A DNA stretch of 64,000 nt from Bugula neritina. Lineage: Eukaryota; Animalia; Bryozoa. The notes under the pieces are model-generated. The model was not told where the DNA came from. It made no database searches and was given only the letters and a program-made list of their open reading frames with translations. The DNA lies in contig OZ037769.1 in NCBI GenBank assembly GCA_964035545.1, forward strand, positions 16,708,633 to 16,772,632, given 5' to 3'. The position numbers were made by a program, and so were the translations under genes. Of the stretch, positions 1 through 30,993 are shown one piece after another (the first letter of the stretch is position 1; each line of letters begins with the position of its first letter).

Positions 1-798
1 TGGTCCTACTACCAGCGAGCTCCAGTAGTAGTCTGAAGCTACACTGGAAACTCGCCTGCTTTTATACACAAGAATTCACATCTAGAATGTTCCAACAGAC
101 AAAAGAAAGTTAAGCTTGACAGTAACAAAAGAAAAATAGACAAAGGAGAATGAATAATTCAATAGGCCAAGAATTTAGCTATAATAACAACCTATTGAAG
201 GCATTCATAAAAGCTACACAAATTTCCAGTATCAGTATTAATGCAAAACGATGAAATAGCAAAAAGGGAAAATAACTCTGGAAATGCGTATTTAATGAAA
301 ATTACATTATACTGAAAGCTTAATCACAATAATAAGGCATTAGAAAGCTAGCCCAACTTAGCTATAATTACAGCATTCAAAACGATACGCAACAGTAGTT
401 ATAATACTGACTCACGCAGTTAAAAACTAATAGAGGGTGAAAATCCATTACAATATTCACTCAAGGCTAATTTCTAGAAACTCAATCTGCTGTTGAAACT
501 TAATCATATTTTAACTTTGCTTCACTCTTTTTATTTTGAAGTTTAGCTTACACCAGCTTGTTTAACCTAATAATAGTTATAATCAAATGGGATCCAAGTT
601 ACATTTACTCTTAACCTAATAACTAAAATAATACAATAATAAAACACACATATATACAAAGTTTGTCCATCAAGGGTATTTGGTCTTTGTAGCTTTATTT
701 TTAATGTAGCTTTTTATTTTTATTTCCTTTAAGTGAACAAACCTATTTGATGCAATTATTTGGGTGGCTGGAAATGCAGAGTTTCGTATATTTACCAG

Positions 799-3700
799 GT
801 AAAGGTTGGTAACAAGAGAGTCAATGTTGGGTATGTCTTCTATAAGACTAACCTCTGGCTGGATAACCCTGCCTTGAGGATCTCCATGATTGTGCTGATG
901 GGCTTAGTGGGTGTGGCTCTCATAGCAGTACTAATCTACTGTTTGGTTAAGAAGTTCTACTTAAAAGAGAGGTTGGAGAAAACCTTGGAAGTTGACGCTG
1001 AAAACAATGGAGGCCATGCTAGATTCGCTAAACAGGGTGAGTAGAGGACTTCCGTGTGGAAGTGTAGCTCACAGTATTGAAGAGTAATCCTTACAGAGTA
1101 AATTGGTAAATTACTAACCAATTAAATGTTAAGTAAACTGTATTAAACAGAAACTTTGCTTTAATTGACCAATGGATGGGTTATTTTGATTTTTCCAGAC
1201 AATTCAAAGGAAATGGAGACTCTTGTTCCTCTCTTCAACAACCGAGAACTTGACGCTGAGATTCAAGCCAAAGTAAATCGCTGTAAAATACTATCTTCAA
1301 GGCTACATATAGGAAATCAGCTAGGGAAAGGTCATTTTGGACTTGTCTATAAAAGTCAATTAACTACACCAGCTGGAAATCTAAGAACTGTAGCTGTAAA
1401 AAGTATTAAAGGTTAGTATTTAAGTATTGAGTGATACACACTATTTATTATCGAATTTTTTGTATTATTAACTACTAGTTTTCAGTGAACTTTTAAATAG
1501 TATAAATAATATTATTCTCCAGTAATAATAATATTAAATAATTAGTTAATATAAGTTTCAATATTACATTTTGTAAATAATATTGTATAATTCTGTATTC
1601 ATATACTGCCCTGTAACGATTTAAACCCAGATATAGTGAATGTTAGTGAAGGGTGCATGTCTCTCATCCCATCGGTTTCTGTTCACCAGAGGATAAGGAA
1701 ATGACGTTTGCAGATTTGGAGAATTTCCTCTCGGAAGGCGTGTTGATGATTGACTTTAAACACGAGAATGTCCTTTCATTGGTCGGTGTAGTGTACGAGC
1801 CAGGTGAACGACCTTTGGTTGTCCTTCCTTACATGGAGAACGGTGACCTTTGCTCTTTTGTGAAGAAAGATGATTTGGTAAGGAAACCGTGTTCTGACTT
1901 TTGTGGAGGTCATCTGATGTCTAGTATATTGATAACAGCAGAAATCTGTAGATTTACTTACTTTTCTCAGCCTAAAAACTAGATTTACCGATGCGAAAAA
2001 GCAGAACTGTTTCATGTAAAAGTGTTTATGAACATGGATATATACGTAAATAAGAATTATTGGCAACACACTTGTTTAATTATTTTCCAAGTGAGTAAAT
2101 AGCTAGCTGTCCGATGACGCCGAAGGATTGGTAGATACCAGAAAATATTTTGGAAATATCTGGTAGTAATATGTCTACTTTAAACTAAGGGCTGCATGAT
2201 TGCTCATTATTTTAAATGCCACTTTAAGTTAGCACTGTTTTTACTTGAGGCTGGAATCGTCTTACAACACATCATATAGATCACATATACAAAGTTTGAA
2301 GGTATTTTACTATAATATGTTGAATATAATAACAAAACTTAGTTTATTGTATATATTATTGTACATGAATAATTTTGCTTTAGGAAATAGTCATGGCTGA
2401 TTTGCTTCACTTTGCCTATCAGATAGCTAATGGAATGGCTTATCTAGCCAAGGAGAGATTTGTTCATCGAGATTTGGCAGCCAGAAACTGCATGTGAGTT
2501 GTTTCCCCTGCTCTTTTTATTTACTGCTTTTCTTAATAAATGATTTGTTATAATTGTATACTGATATTAACTCCTTTGAGACTATCAGTTCCTTTACACT
2601 TAAGCGATAAGCTACCCTTCTATTTGTACAAACTAATCTTTCTTTTCAATAGATCTTTTCACCACCTCTCCTTGATTAAGACAATGCTGACTTGTTCTAA
2701 CTGAAAAAATTACTCTTTTCTTTTTAACAGGTCATAATAAGTTGTTTTATGAGTTCAATTGTTTTTCTTTTACTTAAACATAATTAAATTACAAAAACAT
2801 GTTATAAAATCTAACTAAGTCAAGTGAAATTTTATTCCACATTTAAACTATTTTCAAAGCCTATTTTATATAGTAATGTCCATTCTCTGTTGATTGGTTG
2901 TGTAGGGTTGACGGATCTTACTTTGTGAAGATAGCAGACTTCGGTATGTCTCGTGATGTCTACTCACAAGATTACTACAGAATGGGAGACATGAACAAAC
3001 CTCTGCCAATGAAATGGATGGCTGTGGAGTCACTGAAGGAAGGGAAATACACATCAAAGTCTGACGTGGTACATGTTTAATTTCTCTTTTGTCTAAGAGT
3101 AGTTTTAGCAGTGTAGCAAAGTTAGCTAACTTTTGCCACGTGCACAAGCTCTTGCCATTGTTTAGACAAATTTACACTGGTTGGTTTATGAATCTTTCAA
3201 TGTACAAAGTATTTTTATTTAGTGGTCTTTTGGAGTAACTGTATGGGAGTTACTCACTCGTGGTAGCACACCATACCCAGGAGTAAGCAACTACCATATT
3301 AAAGAATATGTCTCTGCTGGTAGACGATTGGACAAGCCTGAAATCTGTCCTCCAATCATGTAAGCTTACAGAGATTAGCTGCATGCATTATTCATGCTAA
3401 TACTTGAAATGCGGTTTTATTTTTGCTCATAACTGACTCGATATCAAATTAATGTTTTAATGCCGCTTATCATTTGACTGTGTCTTAGTGAATGACTGTG
3501 TCTTACTGATTGACTGTAACATAGTGACTGTGACTCAGTGAGCGACTGACTCAGTGATTGACTGACTCAGTGAGGGACTGACTCAATATACGACTAGCCA
3601 TTTCCTGTTGCCTCTGAGTGTAATCACATGACATCATCTACTCTAGATATGAAATGATGTGCCGATGTTGGGAGACAGATCCTGAAGATAGACCTGCTTT

Positions 3701-3914
3701 CTCTGAGATTTCCGAGTTTGTTGGTCAACTACTGAATGGTACGACAACTCCCAGTGCTGGCTCAGACAATGATGCTGGTTACTCATACGCACGCTCAACT
3801 ACAAAGGCCATCCCAGATGATTATCTGGAGTCCAATGAATATGCAGACAACTTGGAGCGTGATGACTATTACATAACACCCCTCCCCTCCCACACCACGC
3901 TCTCAGGACACTGA
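799..3914 (+). CDS. MET/RON (hepatocyte growth factor receptor)-like receptor tyrosine kinase, 3' part (5' exons lie upstream of the window)
   Basis: Phase-consistent GT-AG exons 799-1036, 1199-1411, 1690-1877, 2384-2493, 2906-3068, 3223-3359, 3647-3914. They encode an IPT-like end ([15 protein letters not shown]), a TM helix ([23 protein letters not shown]), [76 protein letters not shown] and [10 protein letters not shown], followed by a Tyr-rich tail. GHFG, LPYM..GDL and LP.KWMA are characteristic of MET/RON. Confidence 0.9.
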
Positions 3915-4189
3915 AAGAGTGTATGTCAACACAGAAAACAAGTCAATATAAAATGACATACTCAATGATTCTCACAATTGGAAGAATATTTCTGGGATTC
4001 TGCTTTCTCTCACCATGTTCTATTCATAATAACTGTTATCTTACACTCATGTTGTACTTATAACTTTGCAAGTTGAGAATGATATTCAGTTAGCATACAA
4101 TCAAAGTGATATACGCCTTAGATATTGTCATATAAAACTCACCCACACTATGTTATTATCGTGGATATGAATGTGATAACTCCTGATGG

Positions 4190-4350
4190 TTTTTTTTATA
4201 ATGGACTAAGAGCTTTGTCCCAAAGAGGAACTGGCACAGAAGCAATTATGACTGGATATACTCTTCCTACCATCACTACTGGTGTTTGGGACTCAAACCA
4301 ATGACCTTGTATTTACTAGGTCAGCATTCTAATCACTGCATGGTATCATA
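4190..4350 (-). mobile_element. Decayed tRNA-derived SINE-like repeat (duplicate at ~12430-12590; family member at ~47335-47486)
   Basis: Shares the core ggcacag(a/g)ag(c/t)aattatgactggat..ctcttcct with 47370-47410, and has degenerate A/B-box-like sequence on the minus strand. Confidence 0.45.
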
Positions 4351-5985
4351 GCAGCCTTTCACATATTTTCTACACATTATATTTGTAGATATTTACTCAG
4401 GCAAACAGTCTTAAACCCAGCAATAATAAATAAACCTCAAATTATTGATATTATAACTAATCACCTAATGGTATATTTCAATGGTTTATTTTTATGTCAA
4501 TTTAGAAAAGTTATAGATTTGTGTGAGTTTTTTAATGTTCTATACATTCTCTTATATGATAAATTAAATTTTATGCTAGCTTGAAATATTTATAGTTTTT
4601 AATGGGATAGAGAGGACAGCTGCCTGATTGATATTCTCACCTTGATCTAACTGGTTTGTAACGATGCCATGTATTAGCATTGTTCATTTTATATAATAAA
4701 GATACATTTCTTATAAATTGTCACATCTACAATGTATACGATATATGACATATTTGTTATTCAATGTTTATAATATTTGGTCTTCAGTTATTCTTAATCT
4801 GCAGGGGCTGAGGACTTTCAATGTAAATTAAAAGAACAGTGGTGGATACAGGCAGCCAGAACCCTTTCTGTACAGGGACATAATATAAATAAATTATACC
4901 ATATTATGATTACTATCTAATAGCAGCCCAGCTTTATACTGTCTTCATTATTTATAAAATGGTTTTCAAACTTTCCTACACTCAAGTCTGCTGTGTTAAG
5001 TGAGGCCAAACTGCTGTCAGTTAGACAAGGTAGATTTATAGCAGCTACCTTTTCATCAACCATTGGAATATTGTTTAGATATTTAAACATAGTGCTTAAA
5101 ATAATATTGAGACCACTATCCCTCGTGTGCAGTATACCTAAATAGTAATATAACAGAATACAATAATATTATATTGCAAAGTAATTTAATATAGTACCAT
5201 AATATAATAAAGTGTAATATGATAAAATGTAAAAGTTTTTCGTAAGCAAATAGACCTAATTGATTAAGTCTGGTTACTAGCAGAGTTAACTGTACTAAAT
5301 TATATCAAGCAAGTGTGCTTGGTGCAGCTGAAACATGCTGTTGGTTTTCTTGCTTAGGTTTCCAGATATCTATCTCTTTGAAGAGGACAACTCCTAGTTA
5401 TTTACTTTCTGCACTAATAAACTCTGAATAGAAATGGTAAAATTATTGAGCTGTGCAGGAGGTTTAACAAGCATGGCTAGTAATTAATTATACTTAAAAT
5501 AGATTGTGTAAAGACTATGTGATTTATCAGATCTGTCATATAGCATGAAATAAGATCATTAAAGGAAAAACATTTTATTAAAGAAGCCAATAGTATAAAG
5601 ACAAAAGATGGGTGACACTATATGATATATTATGGTAAATATATTATACTGATAGCAATAAATATAAGATGCATTACAATCCACGCTGTACGTGGTTTTA
5701 AATAAAAAATAGCACAGTTAAAGCTTTGATTGCTTAAAAATATAGAATAATATAATAATAATAACAGCTATCATTCCAGCTAACAAAAGCTTGTACTAAT
5801 ACATTTACTAAACTATTATATTTATAGTTAAAATAGGCTGAGATTCATTAGAATCACTAATAGTCTGAGAAATCTTTAATCATGATGTCAGTTCAGTTAC
5901 TATTTTAACGTTGGTGAATCAGCAAAATTGAAAGCTGTGGTAACACAATGTAGTCATATATGTTTACTGCGGTTGCAGCTATTGG

Positions 5986-8609
5986 TTAATTTTGAGTATG
6001 GTAACCAAGAGGGTTTGATATGGCTGTCATAGGGGTGGCGTCAGAGGGCCCCACAACTGTTACACTAGATTTGGACCACTGGTAGTGTCTGTAGGCTTTC
6101 ACACCAAACAGAAACAGGAAAACTACAAGCATGCAGCTGACTCCGATACCTATGGCAGCGTTCACTCCTACAGGGATGTCAACAGCCGCTGCTGAAGATA
6201 TCATGGTGAGCAGCATGAAAATCTAAAAATAGAAATGTTTAGGAATATAGCCTAAGAACTTAGAGAACTTGGAGATATAAGGCTTTACTTTGTAGCAAAT
6301 AACAGATAAAGGAGCTTTGATACTCTAGGTGTTTTAGGATAGTTTGACTTTAATTAAACTACTGCCTTTATGGTAATATTAGCAAAGAGACTACATTTTC
6401 AACACATGTAACTGTAATTATTATGCATAAGAAGAGGAAACTGTGCTCTGTACAGCCAGTAATTTGTCAAGTTAGTGAATATGGTGGACATTAACTGAAG
6501 CAAGAATGTGGAAGCTCGAGATATTGGTTTGAGTAACATTACTTCCTATGGGAAGCTTACTCTAGCTCTGGAAGTGCTTGCTACCCTTGATTGAGGTATG
6601 ATATACTACTGATCTGTTGTTATATAATAGTTGTTATATAACAGTTGTTGTATAATATACTGTTATACTGTTATAGTGTATTGTTCATAATCCCTCACTC
6701 TGTAAACTTTAAGAAGTTATTTATCACACGTGTGGTTATCATTGAAGTTAATATACTGCATTAATGTTGCACATCTAACCTACATTTACTGTAGAATCTA
6801 CACATAATATGACCTACATACACTGTAATGTGTAGACAGGGGAGATAATTCTGGCTATTCATAGCTTTATTTGTTTCTACTGTTGGCTTTTGTAGCTTTA
6901 TTTTCAGCTTGTTGGCTATAATACATAAAATAGCTACCACTTCATAGCTGTAGACAAGGAATAGCTAAAACTAGCTTCACATTTGTTAGCTTTACCAAGA
7001 ATAAATTTCTGTAAGAATTAAAATTTGTGAGTATTTATTACATTGATAAGATTTCTCCTTAATTACTCGTAATATGATTTGTATATACAGTTAGCCAAAC
7101 ATTATTTATGTGCTTTTAAGAGTATTTTCTGTGTATAAATATTTAAATGAGTTTCAGTTTAGTGTACTAAACACAGTCAATAAATGAACGTATTACCTGT
7201 AGTCTGCATATATATATATAGTTGTTAGAGAAAGTGCTGTGTATTTCTAGCACAATGCTTATACATAATATTGTACTAGTATCTGTGCATACTGTAGCCC
7301 ACTAGTCATACTGTATATTGTATCAATAAGTAGACCTAATAGATTATATATTTCAGTTGATATAAAACGTGCCGAATGACAGATCATGAATTATTTTATT
7401 TTTATAAGCTTAATTGAACTATTCAAGCTTTCATTCTGTATATTTGGAAATTTGTGGTTAGGTTTGGTTTTGGTTAGCTACTAGCTGGGAGCTAATCAGA
7501 ATATGTCAGTATATATGGGTGGAATATGACTATGTAATACGTATGTGTATGTGGCTGTGTGTGTACAGGCAGCTGACATTATCATATAATTTGAATATTA
7601 AGCAGGGGAAAATAAACACTTTATTGGTCTTAGTTAAACAGGAGCTTAACTAGAGTTATACCTGAGCATATTGAACATAATATACTGTATGTCTTGACAC
7701 ATTACTTATATATTATACATGCTGCATGTTGCGTATAAAACATAATATATTCAGGCATATATAAGTAGCTATAGTAAGTTATGTAGTACATAAGTAAGCA
7801 TTATAGTAAGTCATAAGTAAGTATTATAGCATTGCATGTAATGATTAAGTGCATTAAGTCATTATAGTAAGTCTAGTAAATCATGCATAAGTAGGTATAA
7901 TTTAAGTCATGAGTAAGTACATTAAGTCATGAGTAAGTACATTAAGTCATGAGTAGTATATAGTAAGGATTTGGTAAGGTATAGGTAAGAATTACATTGA
8001 GTCTTATTTTCTAGAAATAATGAAATAGTGTTGGAATAAAACATTTCATACATGTACCTGAACATATTATATCACATGTTTCAGAATTTATTACTGAAAT
8101 TGCATAATGAGTCAAGTTCATATAATATATCTTTCTTGCAATGACAGAGTATGTATATAACATATAGTTGCCCTAATTATTAATATTCAAATGTTGATCT
8201 ACTGGGAAGAACAGGTAAATAATATAAATACTAGAAAGAACTCTCTGCATATGTTGCTGAAAAATGTGAGCTTTTATTTAGAGCTAGAGTGACTCCTTTT
8301 AGACTGAGTTCCTCAACTTCTATAGCTTCAGGTCTCAGTTACAGAAATGTAGTGCTATGTAGTATCTTTGTTAAAAGTCTCTCCTCACCTCTCCCCCCCC
8401 CACCCCCTCCTCCCCCCCCCTCCACAAGTTTATTGACTTGTTCACTTTTGCAGTCATCCATTCCCATACCATGCATCATTTAGTTCTACTGTTACATTCA
8501 TGTTGCCTTCAACTATTCTCCTTCGATTGTAGCTATACTTAGCCTAAGGCTATAAAGACAATAACTCAGAGAGTATATAACTAAACATACGTACCTTTCG
8601 AGTCTGCAT
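5986..8609 (-). CDS. Small single-pass membrane protein (~83 aa, signal peptide + TM), copy A
   Basis: Micro-exon 8609-8595 (ATG CAG ACT CGA AAG|gtacgt) joins in phase 0 to exon 6222-5986 (ttttag|ATT TTC ATG). Product: MQTRKIFMLLTMISSAAAVDIPVGVNAAIGIGVSCMLVVFLFLFGVKAYRHYQW...NPLGYHTQN. Versus copy B there are 7 synonymous and 2 conservative (I/M) differences. Confidence 0.75.
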
Positions 8610-8682
8610 AACTCCGTCTTCTCTAAATACTGGTGAATGCTGCAAGAGTGAATACTACTAGATGTAGCTATACTTGTTGGTG

Positions 8683-8940
8683 CTGATTAACTGACGAAGA
8701 AACTTAAAGAAGAAATGTATTAGTTTAAGTTACTCATGCGTGGAGTCCAGGCCTCGGCACTCTCATCATGACAATGCATTTGAAAGAATTATATTGAGAT
8801 GGATTTTACGTTACGGTTGGCTACGTGCATATAATATTATATACGAAGTTTCAATACAGTTGTATAGTTTTATGTTTAGGATTACCCTCTCTTGACGTGA
8901 CAGTAAAGTTAGGGCATGCAACTCCAACTACAGAATATAT
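8683..8940. repeat. ~250-bp segment upstream of the micro-protein first exon, repeated at ~10864-11140, ~16887-17140 and ~21531-21810
   Basis: Shared text tgctgattaactga...aaagaagaaatgtattagtttaagttactcatgcgtggagtccaggcctcggcactctcatc...gagatggattttacg is present 4 times. Confidence 0.85.
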
Positions 8941-9723
8941 GGGAAATGCACAAAGGCACTTTAGTAATACCTTATGCAATACAACTAACTATTAATACAC
9001 CTATTGGTAATATTATTGTAGTAATACTGTGGCAACACTCTCAAGTGTCTACCAAAGACTGCTTGCCAACCAGTTACAATCAGCTAAAGATCTATAATAA
9101 CTGATAATTATTAATGTAGACATAATACACATACACCAATACTTATAGAGACTCTTGCATACTATATGAATGTCCTTTGTTTTCATTCAACAGATCAACA
9201 TTATAACTACATCTGTAAAGTGTTGCTAATTTCATTCAATCAATTTTAAGTATATGATCAATAAGTTAGTTGATTTTTTGATGCAATGTGTCTTTTAGTC
9301 AGCTATACCAAGCAATAGCCTAATATTTAAAATACATATTTTTGTCTTATAGAATACCATTTCTAATTGTATTTTTCTTACCATTTCTAATTGTATTTTT
9401 CTAAGTTTGCAAATTGATTAACACCTCTTGCATCTAAATTAGCCAATCAGCAATCAGTGCTAAACTGATGACCCCGTGAAACAAATGCAAAATGCTTTTT
9501 CAAAAGAAAGAAGGAATATACTAAACATGCTTGAATTGAACTGGATAAAAAAATTAATTGTTAAAAACAGGACACTTTAATAAATTTATTAGAGCACACA
9601 AAAATTTGATTGTTAGGCATTTGACTGTTTTGAAGAAAAGTTAAAAGTTATTATAATAGCAGAATTTAATGTCAATTTTATTAGGTAACATTGGAAATTG
9701 TCAAAAACTGCTAGAATTAATGT

Positions 9724-10197
9724 TTATGAAACGATGCAACTAGGTTTTGAATTATGCATTTCCTTAAGCACTGAAAGCATTTTCATTTTGGTTTTTAAAA
9801 TTGCATTTTCCATCATGATTCTTTGTTTTTCTTCTTTTTCTTCTTTCATTTTTTCTTTTAGCCCATCGAGTTGTTGTTGGTAAAGTATCTTGTTTTCACC
9901 TTTAGCATTCTTGAGTTCTTCAACTAAAAGCTCCATCTCTTTTGTTCTAGATTCCTCTCTTGCCTCTGCCTCCTTTACCTTCTTTGTATTTTCCAATAAT
10001 TCTCTTTCTAATTGTTGCATCTTCAGCCAGTTTTTTTCTGCCTCTTGCTCAAATTTATGTTGTAATTGCTCATTTGTGTTTTTCATTTCTTGAATATCCT
10101 TTTCATGTCTATAGGCTGCCAGTACTTCCTTTTCTCTAGCCGCAAACCATTCTGTAATCATGTCTTCATATTTCCTACAAGTTTTAGAATCCACCAT
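9724..10197 (-). CDS. Coiled-coil exon/ORF ending in CaaX (CIVS); paralogous terminal exon (T3) of the atlastin/GBP-like gene
   Basis: Acceptor ttgtag|GAAATATGAAGAC at 10174 matches those at 22808 and 24826. KYED..EW...EK..L...RH.K..QE is homologous to the GTPase gene's last exon. E/K-rich heptads; ends SKPSCIVS*. Also has its own in-frame ATG at 10197. Confidence 0.7.
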   Translation of the reverse strand: MVDSKTCRKYEDMITEWFAAREKEVLAAYRHEKDIQEMKNTNEQLQHKFEQEAEKNWLKMQQLERELLENTKKVKEAEAREESRTKEMELLVEELKNAKGENKILYQQQLDGLKEKMKEEKEEKQRIMMENAILKTKMKMLSVLKEMHNSKPSCIVS

Positions 10198-10372
10198 GAT
10201 GCTAATATCATTAATACCAACTGGCCATTTTTTATTTCAATGATTTTGATAGTTTTAATTGGTTTAGTAGTTTTTAGCTTTTAGATCTAGTAAAATTAAA
10301 TTTAGCCATTGATGGAAGGTTATGCAAAGTTTAGACTATAATATAGTCAATTAGTACAAACAAGCTATATTA

Positions 10373-10375
<3 letters not shown>

Positions 10376-10437
<62 letters not shown>
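10376..10437. repeat. (TA)n microsatellite (shorter counterpart at ~21108-21128)
   Basis: Direct reading. Confidence 0.95.
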
Positions 10438-10443
<6 letters not shown>

Positions 10444-11880
10444 GATTTGTGCCCACCATGATCACTCATCCTTTAGCAAATTCATTAAAATGTCAGAGTC
10501 AGAATAGAAAATCAAAACCATGCTATAGATATTTATATATAAATCTGAACATACATAACGAGATGCTATAAGAGATGTTTATAAATTTTTTAACTGTATA
10601 AGCAAAGTATCCATGTATTATATCAATAATGTAATGAGCGATCATTACGTGGTTTTAAGTTGTTCATAGTCGATAAATATAAGATGGAGTATTTTTCCCA
10701 AACTAACATTTGAATAAGTACTGTCTTGTATTTATAACATAACATCAATAATATATACTACAATGGTTTAACGATGGTCACTGTGAAATCCGATGGTCAC
10801 TGTGAAATCCGTTCTATACTTAATTCAACTCGCCACTTCGGGTTTTTTAAAAATCTGCAATTCTGCTGATTAACTGAAAAAGAAAGTTAAAGAAGAAATG
10901 TATTAGTTTAAGTTACTCATGCGTGGAGTCCAGGCCTCGGCACTCTCATCGTGACAATGCATTTGAAAGAATTATATTGAGATGGATTTTACGTCACGGA
11001 TGGCTACATGTATACCATATTATATACAAAAACTTTATTCTATTATTAGATGAATAGCATTATTAGTTTTGGTTTGATGTTTGGGACTATACCCTTTCTT
11101 GACACACTGGTGAGGTGAGAGCAGGTAACTTCTATAACTATAACAATATTTACAATTATCAATGACAACATGTGGTTTTTTTAATAAATTCCTGTAAAGA
11201 TATTATATATAGGGATTGATTTTTATTTTCCTATTTATATAGCTCTACCTACATCATTTTCTAAAACCAAATTATTCTTACAATTTTGCCAAAACATTTG
11301 TATTATAGTAAGGAAAGATAATTAATCAAATCAAACTATGATATACAACATAATTAGACCTGCCTGTATAATACATATAACATTACACCACGTCTTCCCG
11401 ATATATACACTGGTGCTTTCTAGTACCAGCTCAACACCTCATTGCAAGCTGCATTTCATACAATCAATTGTTTAAGCACAAAAATTCAATTTTATTAGTT
11501 TGCATTTTTAGGAGTTTAAACAGAAAATAAGAGATTAAAGGCTGTAAAGGCAAATTATGGCACGAAATAACAATTACATTTCCATTTTGAACAAAAAACC
11601 CATTTTCTGACATCTATAAATATAAGTGCAATAGAAATTAATGCTGTGCTGTTTTGTGAAGTGTGACTCACTGAGTGACTAGTGACTAAGATTCTTGAAT
11701 GTGATTAATTGACTGTTACTTTGTGATTGACTGTGAGTACGACTCAGTGTGAGTGAGTGGCTGACTTAGTATTGACTATATGATTTAGTGACTGCTACTT
11801 AGTGATTGATTATGACTCAGTATACGACTAGCCATTTCCTGTTACCACTGAGTACAATCAAATGACATCATCTACTCTAG

Positions 11881-12304
11881 ATATGAAATGATGTGCCGAT
11901 GTTGGGAGACAGATCCTGAAGATAGACCTGCTTTCTCTGAGATTTCTGAGTTTGTTGGTCGACTACTGAATGGTACGACAACTCCCAGTGCTGGCTCAGA
12001 TAATGATGCTGGTTACTCATACGCACGCTCAACTACAAAGGACATCCCTGATGACTTCCTAGAGTCCAATGAATACGCAGACAACTTGGAGCGTGATGAC
12101 TATTACATTACACCCCTTCCCTCTGCCACGGCACTTACAGTGGTGGATGGTACCCCTAAACCCTCCCCTAGGGTCCCCCCTCGCAAGTATAAAATGACAT
12201 ACTCAATGATTCTCACAATTGGAAGAATATTTCTGGGATTCTGCTTTCTCTCACCATGTTCTATTCATAATAACTGTTATCTTATACTCATGTTGTACTT
12301 ATAA
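11881..12304 (+). CDS. Duplicated last exon of the MET-like RTK with a divergent C-terminal tail (alternative terminal exon or gene fragment)
   Basis: Same acceptor (ctctag|atatgaaatg) and frame as 3647-3914. Matches up to YYITPLPS (3 substitutions), then reads ATALTVVDGTPKPSPRVPPRK... No upstream kinase exons are present in this unit. Confidence 0.6.
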
Positions 12305-14220
12305 CTTTGCAAGTTGAGAATGATATTCAGTTAGCATACAATCAAAGTGATATACGCCTTAGATATTGTCATATAAAACTCACCCACACTATGTTATTAT
12401 CGTGGATATGAATGTGATAACTCCTGATGGTTTTTTTTATAATGGACTAAGAGCTTTGTCCCAAAGAGGAACTGGCACAGGAGCAATTATGACTGGATAT
12501 ACTCTTCCTACCATCACTACTGGTGTTTGGGACTCAAACCTATGACCTTGTATTTACTAGGTCAGCATTCTTACCACTGGCATCATAGCAGCTTTTCACA
12601 TATTTTCTACACATTATATTTGTAGATATTTACTCAGGCAAACAGTCTTAAACCCAGCAATAATAAATAAACCTCAAATTATTGATATTATAACTAATCA
12701 CCTAATGGTATATTTCAATGGTTTATTTTTATGTCAATTTAGAAAAGTTATAGATTTGTGTGAGTTTTTTAATGTTCTATACATTCTCTTATATGATAAA
12801 TTAAATTTTATGCTAGCTTGAAATATTTATAGTTTTTAATGGGATAGAGAGGACAGCTGCCTGATTGATATTCTCACCTTGATCTAACTGGTTTGTAACG
12901 ATGCCATGTATTAGCATTGTTCATTTTATATAATAAAGATACATTTCTTATAAATTGTCACATCTACAATGTATACGATATATGACATATTTGTTATTCA
13001 ATGTTTATAATATTTGGTCTTCAGTTATTCTTAATCTGCAGGGGCTGAGGACTTTCAATGTAAACTAAAAGAACAGTGGTGGATACAGGCAGCCAGAACC
13101 CTTTCTGTACAGGGACATAATATAAATAAATTATACCATATTATGATTACTATCTAATAGCAGCCCAGCTTTATACTGTCTTCATTATTTATAAAATTGT
13201 TTTCAAACTTTCCTACACTCAAGTCTGCTGTGTTAAGTGAGGCCAAACTGCTGTCAGTTAGACAAGGTAGATTTATAGCAGCTACCTTTTCATCAACCAT
13301 TGGAATATTGTTTAGATATTTAAACATAGTGCTTAAAATAATATTGAGACCACTATCCCTCGTGTGCAGTATACCTAAATAGTAATATAACAGAATACAA
13401 TAATATTATATTGCAAAGTAATTTAATATAGTACCATAATATAATAAAGTGTAATATGATAAAATGTAAAAGTTTTTCGTAAGCAAATAGACCTAATTGA
13501 TTAAGTCTGGTTACTAGCAGAGTTAACTGTACTAAACTATATCAAGCAAGTGTGCTTGGTGCAGCTGAAGCATGCTGTTGGTTTTCTTGCTTAGGTTTCC
13601 AGATATCTATCTCTTTGAAGAGGACAACTCCTAGTTATTTACTTTCTGCACTAATAAACTCTGAACAGAAATGGTAAAATTATTGAGCTGTGAAGCAGGT
13701 TTAACAAGCATGGCTAGTAATTAATTATACTTAAAATAGATTGTATAAAGACTATGTGATTTATCAGATCTGTCATATAGCATGAAATAAGATCATTAAA
13801 GGGAAAACATGTTATTAAAGAAGCCAATAGTATAAAGACAAAAGATGGGTGACACTATATGATATATTATGGTAAATATATTATACTGATAGCAATAAAT
13901 ATAAGATGCATTACAATCCACGCTGTACGTGGTTTTAAATAAAAAATAGCACAGTTAAAGCTTTGATTGCTTAAAAATATAGAATAATATAATAATAATA
14001 ACAGCTATCATTCCAGCTAACAAAAGCTTGTACTAATACATTTACTAAACTATTATATTTATAGTTAAAATAGGCTGAGATTCATTAGAATCACTAATAG
14101 TCTGAGAAATCTTTAATCATGATGTCAGTTCAGTTACTATTTTAACGTTGGTGAATCAGCAAAATTGAAAGCTGTGGTAACACAATGTAGTCATATATGT
14201 TTACTGGTTGCAGCTATTGG

Positions 14221-16815
14221 TTAATTTTGAGTATGGTAACCAAGAGGGTTTGATATGGCTGTCATAGGGGTGGCGTCAGAGGGCCCCACAACTGTCACAC
14301 TAGATTTAGACCACTGGTAATGTCTGTAGGCTTTCACACCAAACAGAAACAGGAAAACTACAAGCATACAGCTGACTCCTATACCTATGGCAGCATTCAC
14401 TCCTACAGGGATGTCAACAGCCGCTGCCGAAGACATCATGGTGAGCAGAATGAAAATCTAAAAATAGAAATGTTTAGGAATATAGCCTAAGAACTTAGAG
14501 AACTTGGAGATATAAGGCTGCACTTTGTAGCAAATAACAGAGAAAGGAACTTTGATACTCTAGGTGTTTTAGGATAGTTTGACTTTAATTAAAGTACTGC
14601 CTTTATGGTAATATTACCAAAGAGAATACATTTTCAACACATGTAACTGTAATTATTATGCATAAGAAGAGGAAACTGTGCTCCGTACAGCCAGTAATTT
14701 GTCAAGTTGGTGAATATAGCGGACATTAACTGAAGCAAGAATGTGGAAGCTCGAGATATTGGTTTGAGTAACATTACTTCCTATGGGAAACTTACTCTAT
14801 AGCTCTGGGAGTGTTTGCTACCCTTGATTGAGGTATGATATACTACTGATCTGTTGTTATATAATAGTTGTTATATAATAGTTGTTGTATAACATACTGC
14901 TATACTGTTACAGTGTATTGTTCATAATCCCTCACTCTGTAAACCTTAAGAAGTTATTTATCACACCTGTGGTTATCATTGAAGTTAATAAACTGCATTA
15001 ATGTTGCACATCTAACCTACATTTACTGTAGAATCTACACATAATATGACCTACATACAGTGTAATGTGTAGACAGGAGAAATAATTCTGGCTATTCATA
15101 GCTTTATTTGTTTCTACTGTTAGCTTTTTTAGCTTTATTTTCAGCTAGTTGGCTATAACACATAAAATAGCTACTACTTCATAACTGTAGGCAAAGAATA
15201 GCTAAAACTAGCTTCACATTTGTTAGCTTTACCAGGAATAAATTTCTGTAAGAATTAAAATTTGTGAGTATTGATTACATTGATAAGATTTCTCCTCAAT
15301 TAATATGATTTTTATACAGTTGGCCAAACATTATTGATATGATTTTAAGAGTATTTTCTGTGTATAAATATTTAAATGGGTTTCAGTTTAGTGTACTAAA
15401 CACAGTCAATAAATGAACATATTACCCGTAGTCTGCATATATATATATAGTTGTTAGAGAAATTGCCGTGTGTTTCTAGCACAATGCTTATACATAATAT
15501 TGTACTAGTATCTGTGCATACTGTAGCCCACTGGTCATACTGTATATTGTATCAATAAGTAGACCTAATAAATTATATATTTCAGTTGATATAAAACGTG
15601 CCGAATGACAGATAATGAATTATTTTATTTTATAAGCTTAATTAAACTATTCAAGCTTTCATTCTGTGTTTGGAAATTTGTGGTTAGGTTTTAACGCTAC
15701 AGCTACTAGCTGGGAGCTTATAAGAATATGGCAGTATATATGGGTGTAATATGACTATATATGATATGTATGTGTAAGGAATATGGCTGTGTGTGTACAG
15801 GCAGCTGACATTATCATATAATTTGAATACTAAACAGGGGAACATAAACACTTTATTGATCTTAGGTAAACAGGAGATTAACTGGAGTTACCTGAGCATA
15901 TTGAACATAATATACTGTATGTCTTGACACATTACTTATATATTATACATGCTGCATGTTGCGTATAAAACATAATATATTCAGGCATATATAAGTAGCT
16001 ATATAGTAAGTTATGTAGTACATAAGTAAGCATTATAGTAAGTCATAAGTAAGTATTATAGCATGTAATGATGAAGTACATTAAGTCATTAGTAAGTCTA
16101 GTAAATCATGCATAAGTAGATATAATTTAAGTCATGATTAAGTACATTAAGTCATGATTAAGTACATTAAGTCATGAGTAGGTATATAGTAAGGATTTTT
16201 TGTATGCTGAGTCTTATTTTCTAGAATTAATGAAATAGTGTTGGAATAAAACATTTCATACATGTACCTGAACATATTATATCACATGTTTCAGAACTTA
16301 TTACTGAAATTGCATAATGAGTCAAGTTTATATCATATATCTTTCTTGCAATGACAGAGTATGTATATAACATGGTATGTCCTAATAATTAATATTTAAA
16401 TGTTGATCTACTGTGAAGATCAGGTAAATAAAATAAACACGAGAAAGAACCATCTGCATGTTTTGCTGAAAAATGTGAGCTTTTATTTAGAGCTAGAGTG
16501 ACTCCTTTTAGACTGAGTTCCTCAACTTCTATAGCTTCAGGTCTCAGTTACAGAAATGTAATGCTTTGTAGTATCTCTGTTAAAAGTCTCTCCCCACCTC
16601 CCCTCCACCCCCTCCTCTCCCCTCCTCCACAAGTTTATTGACATGTTCACTTTTGCAGTCATCCATTCCCATACCATGTATCATTTAGTTCTACTGTTTC
16701 ATTCATGTTGCCTTCAACTATTCTCCTCCAATCGTAGCTACTCAGCTTAAGGCTATAAAGATAATAACTCAGAGAGTAACATATAACTAAACATACGTAC
16801 CTTTCGAGTCTGCAT
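14221..16815 (-). CDS. Small single-pass membrane protein (~83 aa), copy B
   Basis: Micro-exon 16815-16801 (MQTRK) plus exon 14457-14221 (IFILLTMMSSAAAVDIP...HTQN); splice sites conserved with copy A. Confidence 0.75.
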
Positions 16816-17239
16816 AACTCCGTCTTCTCTAAATGCTGGCGAATGCTGCAAGAGTGAATACTACTAGATGTAGCTATACTTGTTGGTGCTGATTAATTGA
16901 CGGAGAAACTTAAAGAAGAAATGTATTAGTTTAAGTTACTCATGCGTGGAGTCTAGGCCTCGGCACTCTCATCATGACAATGCATTTGAAAGAATTATAT
17001 TGAGATGGATTTTACGTCACGGTTGGCTACTATACGTGCATATAATATTATATACGAAGGTTCAATACAGTTGTATAGTTTTATGTTTAGGATTACCCTC
17101 TCTTGACGTGACAGTAAAGTTAGGGCATGCAACTCCAACTACAGAATATATGGGAAATGCACAAAGGCACTTTAGTAATACCTTATGCAATACAACTAAC
17201 TATTAATACACCTATTGGTAATATTATTGTATAGTAATA

Positions 17240-19774
17240 CACAGTTAGTTTAAGGTCATTAGTTTCCAGATTCAAGCACTGCTTTATGTTATATATAAAC
17301 GGTTTCCAGGGGATAGCTCGAACAGTTTTTGTCTCACGTTAACAAATTTGACATGAAAAGATAGCTCTTGCATTCCTCTTTCATATACTTTTTTAATTTT
17401 TCAATAAAAAATTTTCTGAGAAAGTTGTTGCATAATAAGTAAAATTTTACACCCTCCATGTTCCACTGCTGTAGCACAGGGGATTTATTTTATAAAGTCT
17501 AAAAGTTAAACTTGACATTCCTTGATATGTTTTCTCTAATATACTTTCTTTGTTTTTTGAAATTCTGTTTATGCTCTTCACAATTTGGTAAAAACATACA
17601 CCATTTTGCAAGTTTCACTGCAATTTTCTAAATTCTTCATATGGTGGTTCTAGCTACGCTCCTGTGACTAATTATAACATTCCTAGTACGTTTGCCGCTC
17701 TGCGCTATCACAATAACATATAGTACCCTCTCGCACAAATTGGCAATCTATTGGATTTCTGCCAATATAATGTTCCCTGTTTTACATTAGCACTTAGCTG
17801 AATCATCTCACTATGTTACAATAATATATTGAAAATGCCTCAGCACAACATAATTCTTTGTTTGTTTGGCAGAGTTAATTTCAGCTAAATCACTTCACTT
17901 TGCAGTCTTGTCAGTAAAGGTCTGTCTATAGCGCAGCAGGTGTATACTTTCAGTTTCTCTAATTCACATATGATTATTTTAAGTACATTGTATTCTATAA
18001 AATCAATTTAAGGTTTAGTCTAGTGTTCAGTATCTAATTATTATGCATGTATGTTGTCTTACTGTTGAACAAAAGTTAAAAAAAAACTTTACAATTATAG
18101 CCATATTTATTATACATGCGTAGGATTTGCATAAGTTGACAAAAAAAAATTGCAACAAAACAGGGTTGAACCATGACCAACCAACTTGTCGCTGACGCCT
18201 CTAACCTCTGGACCACGCAGTCATCTTTCAAAGACGCGCACTATTTGAGTCATTATCATTACATAAATATTTCGCGCGCAAATGGGTTATAATTATTAGG
18301 CTGTCAATTCATGTTGATAGCAGTCAAAGCAAATGGTTTTGAACAAATAACCCAAAAGTTTAAAAATAAGTAGCTTGCGTATTACTAGCTACAAAAACAG
18401 GTCTGAAATAGACTGGTAAAGCAAGCTCTTATTGTAGAGTTTGCAGATGTGCTCTAAAATAAAACTTAAACTGTATGCTATTACATAAGTATTTGTATTC
18501 GAGAGATAAATGGACATTACTGAGTTTCTGGAAAACAACATACTTGAAGTTAACTTTGACAATGGTGTGTTATTTTCATCATAGCTAGCCTATAGCATAA
18601 ATCTCTAATCATATGAATCTTTATGAAGCCCACAGCTCATGTAAGGGTGGCAATGTAGTTTGAAACTAAAAATTATGTTGCTGCACTGTGTTTATTATAT
18701 ATTATGGAGCAAAATTTGGTTTTTGTAGCCTACCCAAACACATACTACAATGCAGCTTATATGCTGGCAGCTGTAATAAATACTGCCAATAGCAAGGTTA
18801 CTATCACTGCTAGCTCTGTGCAGTATGTAACCTCTTGAATAATTGCGCCAATTTTAAACTCTTGGAAGTTGGCCAAGTTATCATATCGCAGCCAGCCACC
18901 GGAGACAAAGCATCAGAGCTATTCATATAATATTATACTGATGCACTTGGTAGCAGAGTGGCTAATCTAATATAGTTCATAGTTCAACACCCTTTACTTT
19001 AGGAATACAGCCTCTTTTTTTAGGTTTACCTAACAAAGCATGAAAATATCTAAACTGATATTCTGATAATTTAGAGGTACATTTTGAAAACTAGGTTAAT
19101 TGCACTTGTTTGCGCAACAACAATAATAAAATAGATATTATGCAGTATAATAAAAACACACATAATACTATATAATATATTATAATGACAATAATATAAT
19201 ATTATAAGTACCATTACTGCATTTTATAAATCACATGGTTGCCAAAAAAATGTATCACAAATTTTGTAATTATACATCAAAAATAGAACTAGCTAGGCAG
19301 CAGGTTAGAATAGAGTAAATTTTTAAAACATGAAATCATGATTTGACTATTGTTTTATTTAGGCCAACCAACCTAGGAACACAAGATTGGGTTTTAGCTG
19401 ACAGTTTATAACATTTAGCTTTTGAGCCAGCAGCACTGGCACTTGTGAAGTATAGGAAAAGTTAGTGAAGCGAGACTAACAAGCACTCAAATACAAGGCA
19501 TATTGAGACACAATAACAAGTCAGGAGCGTATAAATTGAAAAGAATGTGGAAGGGGGACTATGTTTTTCAACAAGCTATAACTTAAACATGAATTGGCTT
19601 TTGAAAAAAATAAAAAAGTATATTGGAGAACATAAGTTTCTTTATCTTTTCATATTTTTTTTGTTCCTGTGACATTCAACCTGTTCGAGCTATCAGTGGA
19701 ACATTGTTCATATAGAACATAAAGCACCTGGCAAAGAGCCAGAAAATGAAAAGTATGACCTTAAACCAACTGTG
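17240..19774. mobile_element. Non-autonomous DNA transposon (~2.5 kb), imperfect TIRs, TA target duplication (Tc1/mariner- or CACTA/EnSpm-like)
   Basis: Absent from unit A (empty site gtaaTActgtggcaac at 9021-9036). Ends are TA|CACAGTTAGTTTAAGGTCAT ... ATGACCTTAAACCAACTGTG|TA, with further inverted blocks (gatagctcgaacag / ctgttcgagctatc). No transposase ORF. Confidence 0.9.
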
Positions 19775-20444
19775 TACTGTGGCAACACTCTCAAATGTCT
19801 ACCAAAGACTGCTTGCCAACCAGTTACAATCAGCTAAAGATCTATAATAACTGATAATTATTAATGTAGACATAATACACATACACCAATACTTATAGAC
19901 TCCTGCATATACTATATGAATGTCCTTTGTTTTCATTCAACAGATCAACATTATAACTACATCTGTAAAGTGTTGCTAATTTCATTCAATCAACTTTGAG
20001 TATGATCAATAAGTTAGTTGATTTTTTGATGCAATGTGTCTTTTAGTCAGCTATACCAAGCAATAGCCTATTATTTAAAATACATATCTTTGTCTTATAG
20101 AATACCATTTCTAATTGTATTTTTCTAAGTTTGCAAATTGATTAACACCTCTTGCATCTAAATTAGCCAATCAGAAATCAGTGCTAAACTGATGACCCTG
20201 TGAAACAAATGCAAAATGCTGTTTCAAAAGAAAGAAGGAATATACTAAACATGCTTGAATTGAACTAGATAAAAAAATTTGTTAAAAACAGGACACTTTA
20301 ATAAATTTATTAGAGCACACAAAAATTTGATTGTTAGGCATTTGACTGTTTTGAAGAAAAGTTAAAAGTTATTATAATAGCAGAATTTAATGTCAATTTT
20401 ATTAGGTAACATTGGAAATTGCCAAAAACTGCTGGAATTAATGT

Positions 20445-20924
20445 TTATGAAACGATGCAACTAGGTTTTGGACTTTTTACTTTCAGGTCCTCAAGGATTA
20501 AAAATGTTCCTATATTGGTTTTTAAAATTGCATTTTCCTTCATGATTCGTTCTTTTTCTTCTTTCTCTTCTTTCATTTTTTCTTTTAGCCCATCGAGTTG
20601 TTGTTGGTAAAATATCTTGTTTTCACTTTTAGCATTCTTGAGTTTTTCAACTGAAAGCTCCATCTCTTTTGTTCTAGATTCCTCTCTTGCCTCTGCCTCC
20701 TTTACCTTCTTTGTATTTTCCAATAATTCTCTTTCTAATTGTTGCATCTTCAGCTGGTTTTTTTCTGCCTCTTGCTCAAATTTATGTTGTAATTGCTCAT
20801 TTGTGTTTTTCATCTCTTGAATATCCTTTTCATGTCTATAGGCTGCCAGTACTTCCTTTTCTCTAGCCGCAAACCATTCTGTAATCATGTCTTTATATTT
20901 CCTACAAGTTTTAGAATCCACCAT
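20445..20924 (-). CDS. Coiled-coil exon/ORF ending in CaaX (CIVS); paralogous terminal exon (T2) of the atlastin/GBP-like gene
   Basis: Acceptor ttgtag|GAAATATAAAGAC at 20901, compatible with the phase-2 donors at 24235/25884; ends PKPSCIVS*. Duplicate of 9724-10197 with a divergent pre-CaaX segment. Confidence 0.7.
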   Translation of the reverse strand: MVDSKTCRKYKDMITEWFAAREKEVLAAYRHEKDIQEMKNTNEQLQHKFEQEAEKNQLKMQQLERELLENTKKVKEAEAREESRTKEMELSVEKLKNAKSENKIFYQQQLDGLKEKMKEEKEEKERIMKENAILKTNIGTFLILEDLKVKSPKPSCIVS

Positions 20925-22438
20925 GATGCTAATATCATTAATACCAACTGGCCATTTTTTATTTCAGTGATTTTGATAGTTTTAATTGGTTTAGTAGTTT
21001 TTAGCTTTTAGATCTAGTAAAATTAAATTTAGCCATTGATGGAAGGTTATGCAAAGTTTAGACTATAATATTATAGTCAATTAGTACAAACAAGCTATAT
21101 TATAATTATATATATATATATATATATAATTAAGATTTGTGCCACCATGATCACTCATCCTTTAGCAAATTCATTAAAATGTCAGAGTCAGAATAGAAAA
21201 TCAAAACCATGCTATAGATATTTATATATAGATCTGAACATACATAACGAGATGCTATAAGAGATATTTATAAATTTTTTAACTATATAAGCAAAGTATC
21301 CATGTATTATATCAATAATGTAATGAGCGATCATTACGTGGTTTTAAGTTGTTCATAGTTGATAAATATAAGATGGAGTATTTTTCCCAAACTAACATTT
21401 GAATAAGTACTGTCTTGTATTTATAACATAACATCAATAATATATACTACAATGGTTTAACGATGGTCACTGTGAAATCCGTTCTACTTAATTCAACTCG
21501 CCACTTCGGGTTTTTTAAAAATCTGCAATTCTGCTGATTAACTGAAAAAGAAACTTAAAGAAGAAATGTATTAGTTTAAGTTACTCATGCGTGGAGTCCA
21601 GGCCTCGGCACTCTCATCGTGACAATGCATTTGAAAGAATTATATTGAGATGGATTTTACGTCACGGATGGCTACATGTATACCATATTATATACAAAAA
21701 CTTTATTCTATTATTAGATGAATAGCATTATTAGTTTTGGTTTGATGTTTGGGACTATACCCTTTCTTGACACACTGGTAAGGTGAGAGCAGGTAACTTC
21801 TATAACTATAACAATATTTACAATTATCAATGACAACATGTGGTTTTTTTAATAAATTCCTGTAAAGATATTATATAGGGATTGATTTTTATTTTCCTAT
21901 TTATATAGCTCTACCTACATCATTTTCTAAAACCAAATTATTCTTACAATTTTGCCAAAACATTTGTATTATAGTAAGGAAAGATAATTAATCAAATCAA
22001 ACTATGATATACAACATAATTAGACCTGCCTGTATAATACATATAACATTACACCACGTCTTCCCGATATATACACTGGTGCTTTCTAGTACCAGCTCAA
22101 CACCTCATTGCAAGCTGCATTTCATACAATCAATTGTTTAAGCACAAAAATTCAATTTTATTAGTTTGCATTTTTAGGAGTTTAAACAGAAAATAAGAGA
22201 TTAAAGGCTGTAAAGGCAAATTATGGCACGAAATAACAATTACATTTCCATTTTGAACAAAAAACCCATTTTCTGACATCTATAAATATAAGTGCAATAG
22301 AAATTAATGCTGTGCTGTTTTGTGAAGTGGATGCAACGTAATATTACATGAAAAAAAACCCACTCAATATTAAATATGCTCTAATTAAATTGAATAAAAT
22401 TTTACTGAATTAGGATATTTTAAAAAGTCTGAGAACTT

Positions 22439-30993
<8,555 letters not shown>

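Follow-up and report, generated by a model that had tools for sequence, protein, structure and literature searches.

Can one large GTPase gene of a bryozoan choose between lipid-anchored tails by exchanging its last exon? We addressed this question in a stretch of 64,000 nucleotides (nt) of the Bugula neritina genome (assembly GCA_964035545.1, contig OZ037769.1, positions 16,708,633 to 16,772,632 of the forward strand), hereafter called the window and numbered from its first letter. Its minus strand carries, from 30993 to 22439, an intact atlastin-like GTPase gene without a transmembrane segment, in which all splice sites are canonical. An initial annotation of the window had proposed the last exon of this gene (T1) and two exons farther downstream (T2 and T3) as interchangeable ends of one GTPase head. 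Based on our analysis, we put the probability that T1 and T2 serve as alternative last exons at about 0.5. T3 is equipped as a third choice but is young, and its use is doubtful; it may be used rarely or never.

Anatomy of the three last exons

All three exons lie on the minus strand. T1, the proximal one (22439..22808), encodes a conserved KYED helix followed by a disordered tail and ends in CIIS and a stop codon. T2 (20445..20901), which has the ending typical of the family, comprises 151 codons, encodes a long helix and ends in KPSCIVS and a stop; T3 (9724..10174), a young copy of T2, has 149 codons and the same end. T2 and T3 are contained in open reading frames (ORFs) of 159 amino acids (20445-20924) and 157 amino acids (9724-10197), both closing with PSCIVS. 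Reading of the sequence gave acceptors of the form ...ttgtag/G at 20901 (T2) and 10174 (T3) and ...ggtag/G at 22808 (T1), where the slash marks the splice site; the acceptor type ...gtag/G and the phase are common to T1, T2, T3 and a fourth T-like exon described below (T0). Two upstream AA/gt donors at 24235 and 25884 (...CACCACAA/gt) leave two bases which yield a lysine with the first base of the T exons (AA+G = K), after which KY(E/K)D follows; T2 and T3 begin K-Y-(K/E)-D-M-I-T-E-W after the acceptor. Exons were searched individually throughout, and the frame between them was checked by phase arithmetic. The acceptor and KY(E/K)D start shared by the three exons, their phase fit to both donors and the CaaX ends CIIS (T1), CIVS (T2) and CIVS (T3) had all been pointed out in the initial annotation and are borne out by our reading of positions 20901, 10174 and 22808, by the phase arithmetic and by the ORFs, respectively. 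As expected of alternative last exons, T1, T2 and T3 have acceptors in phase with common upstream donors, and each brings its own CaaX box, stop codon and poly(A) signal.

The three CaaX boxes agree with the farnesyltransferase-substrate motif (C-aliphatic-aliphatic-X, X = S, M, A or Q) and are by sequence of the farnesylation type, from which we infer that the tails are prenylated. The open frames of T1 and T2 are not explained by chance in DNA of 32% guanine plus cytosine (G+C), the content of the window, because shuffled exons almost never stayed open (0 of 20,000 trials for T2 and 7 of 20,000 for T1). An AATAAA hexamer (20398..20403, minus strand) lies 42 nt past the T2 stop, and its T3 equivalent is found at the same distance (9677-9682). 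In case of T1, an AGTAAA is located about 45 nt past the stop while the first AATAAA follows at +277. This pattern fits a leaky proximal and a strong distal poly(A) site for T1 and T2.

AlphaFold2 (AF2) modelled the first 104 amino acids of T2 as one uninterrupted helix (102-104 residues) with a predicted local distance difference test score (pLDDT) of 95. For T1, the prediction comprises helices at residues 3-40 and 45-64 and, after these, some 58 residues of low confidence; the short disordered tail first ascribed to T1 would correspond to this last part. T2 had been described as a coiled coil of about 150 amino acids. The long helix holds in the AF2 model. Heptad contrast, by contrast, is moderate (above 0.5 in just 12-14% of tail segments) and the tails are about 42% charged (34-42% over all tails). 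Judging from these models, a single charged helix is as possible for the T2/T3 tail as a coiled coil. The likeness to the C-terminal helix of GBPs that had also been proposed is architectural only and finds no match in sequence: Pfam GBP_C did not match exons A, P, T1, T2 or T3 or the paralog tails in an exon-by-exon search of limited sensitivity, and a search of the PDB with a tail profile returned chance coiled-coil matches only. Inspection by eye of the T0-T3 translations for a transmembrane hairpin revealed no hydrophobic run long enough to span a membrane, the longest being FLIL in T2.

Paralogs and age of the tails

A whole-genome search with T2 gave six matches only, namely T2, T3, T0, T1 and, at a distance of 2.4 Mb, a pair of exons of the same contig (C5:14.22 Mb and 14.28 Mb). 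The latter are the last exons of two GTPase paralogs. They start with ag/C AAG TAC (KY), encode charged helices of 182-187 amino acids ending in CPVL and CIVM, and sit 7.7 and 2.8 kb downstream of P-like exons, so that the paralogs resemble the window gene in exon plan, in the charged-helix last exon with its KY start and in the CaaX end. T2 is homologous to both paralog exons over about 120 amino acids. Since the paralogs also have a distal long-helix CaaX exon, a T2-type ending is normal for the family; judged by this homology, T2 is the family-typical tail and T1 the odd one. No further T1-type tail was found in the genome, with the 5' part of T0 as the sole exception. At each paralog locus one T exon was detected (CPVL or CIVM), and T1-type, T0-type and duplicated tails occur in the window gene only. 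Exons of the CIVM paralog (C5:14274500-14294499) were found only from the LFLIRD exon downstream; its first three head exons were not detected within 20 kb, and this paralog may be truncated or have its head farther off. Between the two paralog genes, in opposite orientation, lies a dead T-type exon (C5:14247285-14247784, plus strand) with five stops and 69-80% identity to the last exon of the CIVM paralog, which serves as an internal control for decay.

The alignable part of T1 and T2 begins 9 nt inside the intron, extends over the first ca. 100 nt of the exon and has 83 identical positions among 111 nt. As their DNA cannot be aligned beyond these 111 nt, the duplication must be old, and since 122 and 151 codons have nevertheless stayed open, both exons must have been coding during most of their history. 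That both remain open suggests that both are used. An exact look-up of the T1 ORF returned no record. The first 30 or so amino acids are conserved across all T exons and presumably correspond, as we assume from their position in comparison with the atlastin sequence (about residue 392 onward), to the last helix of the atlastin three-helix bundle. Should this placement be correct, T2 would be designed for attachment to a GTPase body, and a stand-alone protein would be less likely.

Divergence between T2 and T3

Outside a short patch, 40 of the 2498 aligned bases differ (1.6%) within the 2.5 kb shared by T2 and T3. The patch (20466..20519 in T2, NIGTFLILEDLKVKSP; 9745-9792 in T3, KMKMLSVLKEMHNS; minus strand) lies directly before KPSCIVS. 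Here, 17 of the 48 aligned bases just 5' of AAACCTAGTTGCATCGTTTCATAA (encoding K P S C I V S and the stop) differ, and there is an in-frame indel of 6 nt. The excess is strong both against the local rate (binomial p = 8e-19) and against the rate of the A part (p = 5e-13). A concentration of the T2/T3 divergence before the CaaX box had been noticed at the outset and is thus confirmed for about 16 codons, while the assignment of the tail peptides had been swapped: TNIGTFLILEDLKVKSPK belongs to T2 (20445) and TKMKMLSVLKEMHNSK to T3 (9724). Within the 20 residues preceding the CaaX box, T2 has a net charge of +1 and T3 of +4.

A comparison of non-synonymous and synonymous changes (dN/dS) across the two tails had been recommended as a check. 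In the patch, 16 of the 17 changes are non-synonymous and one is synonymous, an excess that does not reach significance (p = 0.13) because only about 8 synonymous sites are available; outside the patch, divergence is about neutral. We do not claim selection on the patch. The hot spot is real and may reflect selection on the region before the CaaX box, a single complex mutation or an old polymorphism that became fixed in the two copies upon duplication. Neither the whole assembly nor a k-mer comparison covering window and paralog loci yielded a donor for gene conversion. Both T2 and T3 have kept the frame, the stop and KPSCIVS through 29 substitutions and one indel, whereas the neutral expectation for survival of both frames is about 0.41 x 0.53 x 1/3 = ~0.07. 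This lends mild support to coding constraint.

Chimeric exon T0 and the copy of exon P

Between exon P and T1, two further elements are found on the minus strand. T0 (24646..24826) is a chimeric in-frame internal exon which starts as the 5' portion of a T exon, goes on as the 3' half of exon A and has kept the exon A donor (GAG/gtggtt compared with GAG/gtgctt in exon A, that is, GAG/gtg); its start is identical in pattern to that of T1. P' (24235..24341) is a copy of P and supplies the second AA/gt donor, at 24235. T0 is 181 nt long and would be entered at phase 2 and left at phase 0, and with P' after it the chain A-P-T0-P'-T is in frame throughout. Left unspliced, T0 would end with AIQA and a stop at 24601, without a CaaX box. 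As neither AATAAA nor ATTAAA occurs within 400 nt downstream, T0 is more likely an internal than a terminal exon.

A tandem duplication from the middle of exon A to the middle of a T exon would explain both T0 and P'. Between the two copies, the introns differ by 11.8%. In their 5' parts, T0 and T1 show stronger conservation (proportion of non-synonymous differences, pN, 0.036; of synonymous differences, pS, 0.146) than P and P' (pN 0.144, pS 0.185). If spliced in, T0 and P' would add about 96 residues repeating part of the helical middle domain.

Body of the GTPase gene

The window gene has the marks of the GBP/atlastin clade (G1 GxxxxGKS, G3 DTQG, G4 RD and a match to Pfam GBP, PF02263), and its ORFs keep all of the G1, G3 and G4 motifs. 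All body exons are on the minus strand. Exon 1 (30757..30993) starts with the ATG at 30993, contains the P-loop GVARSGKS, ends at the donor at 30757 and matches PF02263 with E 3.6e-5; its top match in the PDB is atlastin but not significant (E 0.058). Exon 2 (30115..30252), the switch-1 region, is flanked by AG and GT sites, shows 41% identity to a paralog exon and matches PF02263 weakly at profile positions 45-74. Exon 3 (28808..28966) carries DTQG, the G3 motif, and matches PF02263 with E 4e-7 and, best in the PDB, atlastin-1 and atlastin-3. Exon 4 (28162..28305), with the G4 motif in LFLIRD, was placed by its splice sites and by 47-48% identity to paralog exons, and exon 5 (27827..27971), with the motif FPHPG, aligns to the LPHPG region of atlastin-3 (residues 227-257). 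Atlastins are thus the closest solved structures for exons 1, 3 and 5, without significance in the case of exon 1. The helical middle part begins with exon 6 (26572..26687; phase-1 acceptor, phase-0 donor, 42-45% identity to paralog exons) and continues in exon A (26290..26418), which was read from the sequence and is 57-63% identical to paralog exons, and exon P (25884..25990), identified by reading and phase arithmetic and bearing the first AA/gt donor at 25884.

The eight-kilobase tandem duplication and the neighbouring kinase gene

Self-BLAST of the window delimited two adjoining units of a tandem duplication of about 8 kb, unit 1 at 3579..11663 and unit 2 at 11813..22329, which differ by 0-3.6% plus indels (3.6% in their A part). 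T3 is the copy of T2 from this event. Unit 2 ends 110 nt past the T1 stop, and the junction lies inside a minisatellite of the last intron of a convergent receptor tyrosine-kinase gene. That gene is intact on the plus strand (760..3914, delimited by ORFs), with its last exon at 3654-3914 inside unit 1. Since the left edge of the duplication falls within the minisatellite of this intron, unit 2 carries an orphan copy of the kinase last exon (11888..12304, plus strand) with an altered C-terminal reading: it reads past the normal stop as SATALTVVDGTPKPS..., compared with SHTTLSGH and a stop in the original, and gives only a sub-threshold end match to PF07714 (15.9 bits, cut-off 23.1). T3 lies 14 kb beyond the P' donor. 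On this evidence T3 is not an evolved third member of a cassette but a by-product carried along with 8 kb of other DNA. Neither this segmental duplication, nor T0, nor the standing of T2 as the family-typical tail had figured in the initial annotation.

Several other features of the region were observed. A segment of 2.5 kb (17240-19775) is present in unit 2 only, through insertion or deletion, and no long ORF or family match was seen in it. Each unit also contains two copies of a short dispersed repeat (8634-8933, 10817-11116, 16840-17139 and 21485-21784; ca. 165-300 bp, 60-99% identity), which is probably a small mobile element. A duplicated ORF of 72-76 amino acids (5986-6216 and 14221-14439, both minus strand) sits between kinase exon and T exon and has a clear single transmembrane segment with the juxtamembrane sequence KAYRHYQWSK. 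As neither neighbouring exons nor a family match turned up, this ORF may be a piece of another receptor gene. Farther along the window, a block of 54-59% G+C stands out at 40001-46000 from the background of 32%, with an ORF of 362 amino acids at 39569-40657 (minus strand).

Discussion

We propose three nested tandem duplications as the origin of the present 3' end of the gene. In the first, which is old, the last exon would have been doubled to give T1, proximal and now with a short disordered tail, and T2, distal, in which the charged helix of about 150 amino acids was kept. A later duplication from the middle of exon A to the middle of T1 would have added P' and the chimeric in-frame T0, and the recent one of about 8 kb would have made T3 from T2 together with the copy of the kinase last exon. 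In the transcript, the AA/gt donor of P' (or P) would be spliced to the T1 acceptor, which is weak, with subsequent cleavage at the non-canonical poly(A) signal, or, if transcription reads through, to the T2 acceptor 1.9 kb farther on, which is equally weak, with subsequent cleavage at AATAAA. Two products with a common GTPase body would result whose farnesylated tails differ, a flexible linker in one case and a rigid long helix in the other, and membrane targeting may differ with them.

Several points weigh against this proposal. The joints from P or P' to T1, T2 or T3 are predicted from genomic sequence, and the acceptors of T1, T2 and T3 have poor pyrimidine tracts compared with the tttttttag of the paralogs. 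Apart from the patch, 9 non-synonymous and 3 synonymous changes separate T2 from T3 (omega about 0.6), and since the exon has diverged as much as its 3' flank (3.0% and 2.8%), there is no sign of purifying selection after the last duplication. P and P' have diverged at about the rate of their introns, so that part of the 3' region may be idle. Relatives of the T2 tail outside this genome were found neither by a word search with amino acids 1-112, nor by HMMER among 1.84 billion representatives (0 matches), nor in metagenome contigs. Such blank tail searches may partly reflect collections that leave out records of the Bugula neritina genome.

The same near-neutral divergence and weak acceptors would be expected if T2 and T3 were unused relics. 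In that case, T2 would have been either the terminal exon of a neighbouring paralog that lost its head or the original last exon of the window gene, silenced after T1 had arisen upstream, and T3 would be the copy of a relic. The region is indeed prone to rearrangement, and the duplication that made T3 also gave a plainly useless orphan kinase exon. We nevertheless consider this explanation rather unlikely. The split between T1 and T2 is old, yet T2 keeps its 151 open codons, its CaaX box, its AATAAA and its homology to the paralog tails, whereas the genuine dead T exon of the same genome has five stops, and T2 and T3 have together retained intact frames at a neutral probability of about 0.07. 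The remnant of a deleted paralog, which the initial annotation had held against its own proposal, is without positive support: head and body exons gave no match below E 0.1 in positions 1-22438, that is, downstream of T1, and the window gene is the sole GTPase body near T2. A different origin of the T2/T3 pair would be an assembler that set two divergent haplotypes in tandem, in which case T2 and T3 would be alleles with a hypervariable patch. A difference of 0-3.6% is within the heterozygosity range of marine invertebrates, and it comes with indels between the units; the genome search showed no third copy or separate haplotig. We regard such an artefact as quite improbable. The window contains no N, and the end of unit 1 runs continuously into sequence of the kinase-intron minisatellite, for which reasons we take the duplication as very probably real; an assembler needs spanning reads for a continuous novel adjacency of this kind, and unit 2 has 2.5 kb extra.

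The exons could also act without the GTPase. In T2 and T3 alike, an in-frame ATG (20924 and 10197) precedes the acceptor by 8 codons and opens complete ORFs with their own AATAAA, from which farnesylated helical proteins of 157-159 amino acids would be made, and such a tail could, speculatively, serve as decoy or partner of the GTPase. Beyond this ATG, nothing was found in favour of the stand-alone proteins raised in the initial annotation, and they appear highly improbable. No equivalent of the 8 codons before the acceptor is present in T0 and T1, which lack the ATG, or in the paralogs, where stops occur just upstream; the starting KY...EW...RH.K helix is common to exons clearly spliced onto a body; and a word search of the protein database found no small protein of this kind. 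The full cassette of one head and a choice of T1, T2 or T3, in which the 16 or so residues before the CaaX box would be under diversifying selection or would represent a captured old polymorphism, and in which the enzyme would be sent to different membranes, is in our view unlikely. The anatomy on which it had been based stands, since acceptor type, phase, CaaX boxes and poly(A) signals would allow each of the three ends, but the recent 8-kb duplication speaks against T3 as an evolved member.

The use of T1 and T2 as alternative ends would have close parallels among small GTPases. In K-Ras4A/4B and the Cdc42 isoforms, alternative last exons encode different tails composed of hypervariable region and CaaX box. 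As in the window gene, one GTPase body is combined with at least two phase-compatible terminal exons that bring their own CaaX boxes, and differences fall within the ca. 20 residues before these. However, K-Ras and Cdc42 are small Ras-superfamily GTPases with proven isoforms, whereas the window gene has a large dynamin-superfamily body and tails of 120-150 amino acids that were read from the genome. Closer in the type of body, human ATL2-1 and ATL2-2 are atlastin splice isoforms which differ solely in their C-terminal extension (PMC8624677). ATL2 is likewise an atlastin-type GTPase with alternative C-terminal exons, which in its case tune activity, but it is anchored by a transmembrane hairpin and its variable part is a short autoinhibitory helix; the window gene lacks the hairpin, and its variable part bears the presumed lipid anchor.

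Vertebrate GBP1, GBP2 and GBP5 have a helical C-terminus and are CaaX-prenylated (PMC9005921). They resemble the window gene in the GBP/atlastin-type G domain, the long helical C-terminal part and the CaaX box, a vertebrate-type GBP feature that is present both in the window gene (CIIS/CIVS) and in its paralogs (CPVL/CIVM). In contrast, the head of the window gene is nearer to atlastins, the GBP C-terminal domain finds no match, and GBP tail diversity comes from separate genes rather than from alternative exons. The CaaX box of GBP1 is CTIS, which CIVS and CIIS resemble in the farnesyl-type X = S. Among invertebrates, silkworm BmAtlastin-n and Atlastin3/4 are atlastin-family GTPases without a transmembrane segment, and BmAtlastin-n is antiviral (PMC4926086). 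They share with the window gene the absence of the hairpin and a helical or coiled-coil C-terminal part but differ in that, in the parts of PMC4926086 consulted, neither a CaaX box nor alternative tails are reported.

Conclusion

In conclusion, if neither exon were used, the locus would merely record repeated tandem duplication at the 3' end of a gene. If all three tails were chosen from, it would represent tail switching in the style of K-Ras4A/4B in a GBP-like and possibly immune large GTPase of an invertebrate. Should T1, T2 and perhaps T3 be true alternative ends, this would be the first known large GTPase of the GBP/atlastin type to switch its lipid-anchored tail by exon choice and not by gene duplication. 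It would join two known principles, the switching of hypervariable region and CaaX box in Ras and Cdc42 and the C-terminal splice regulation of human atlastin. The 48-nt hot spot between near-identical copies offers a concrete target for selection tests, and the gene, which belongs to a family that has expanded in this animal group, would be a simple system for studying the way in which such enzymes are guided to membranes by the length of their tails and by the residues preceding the CaaX box.

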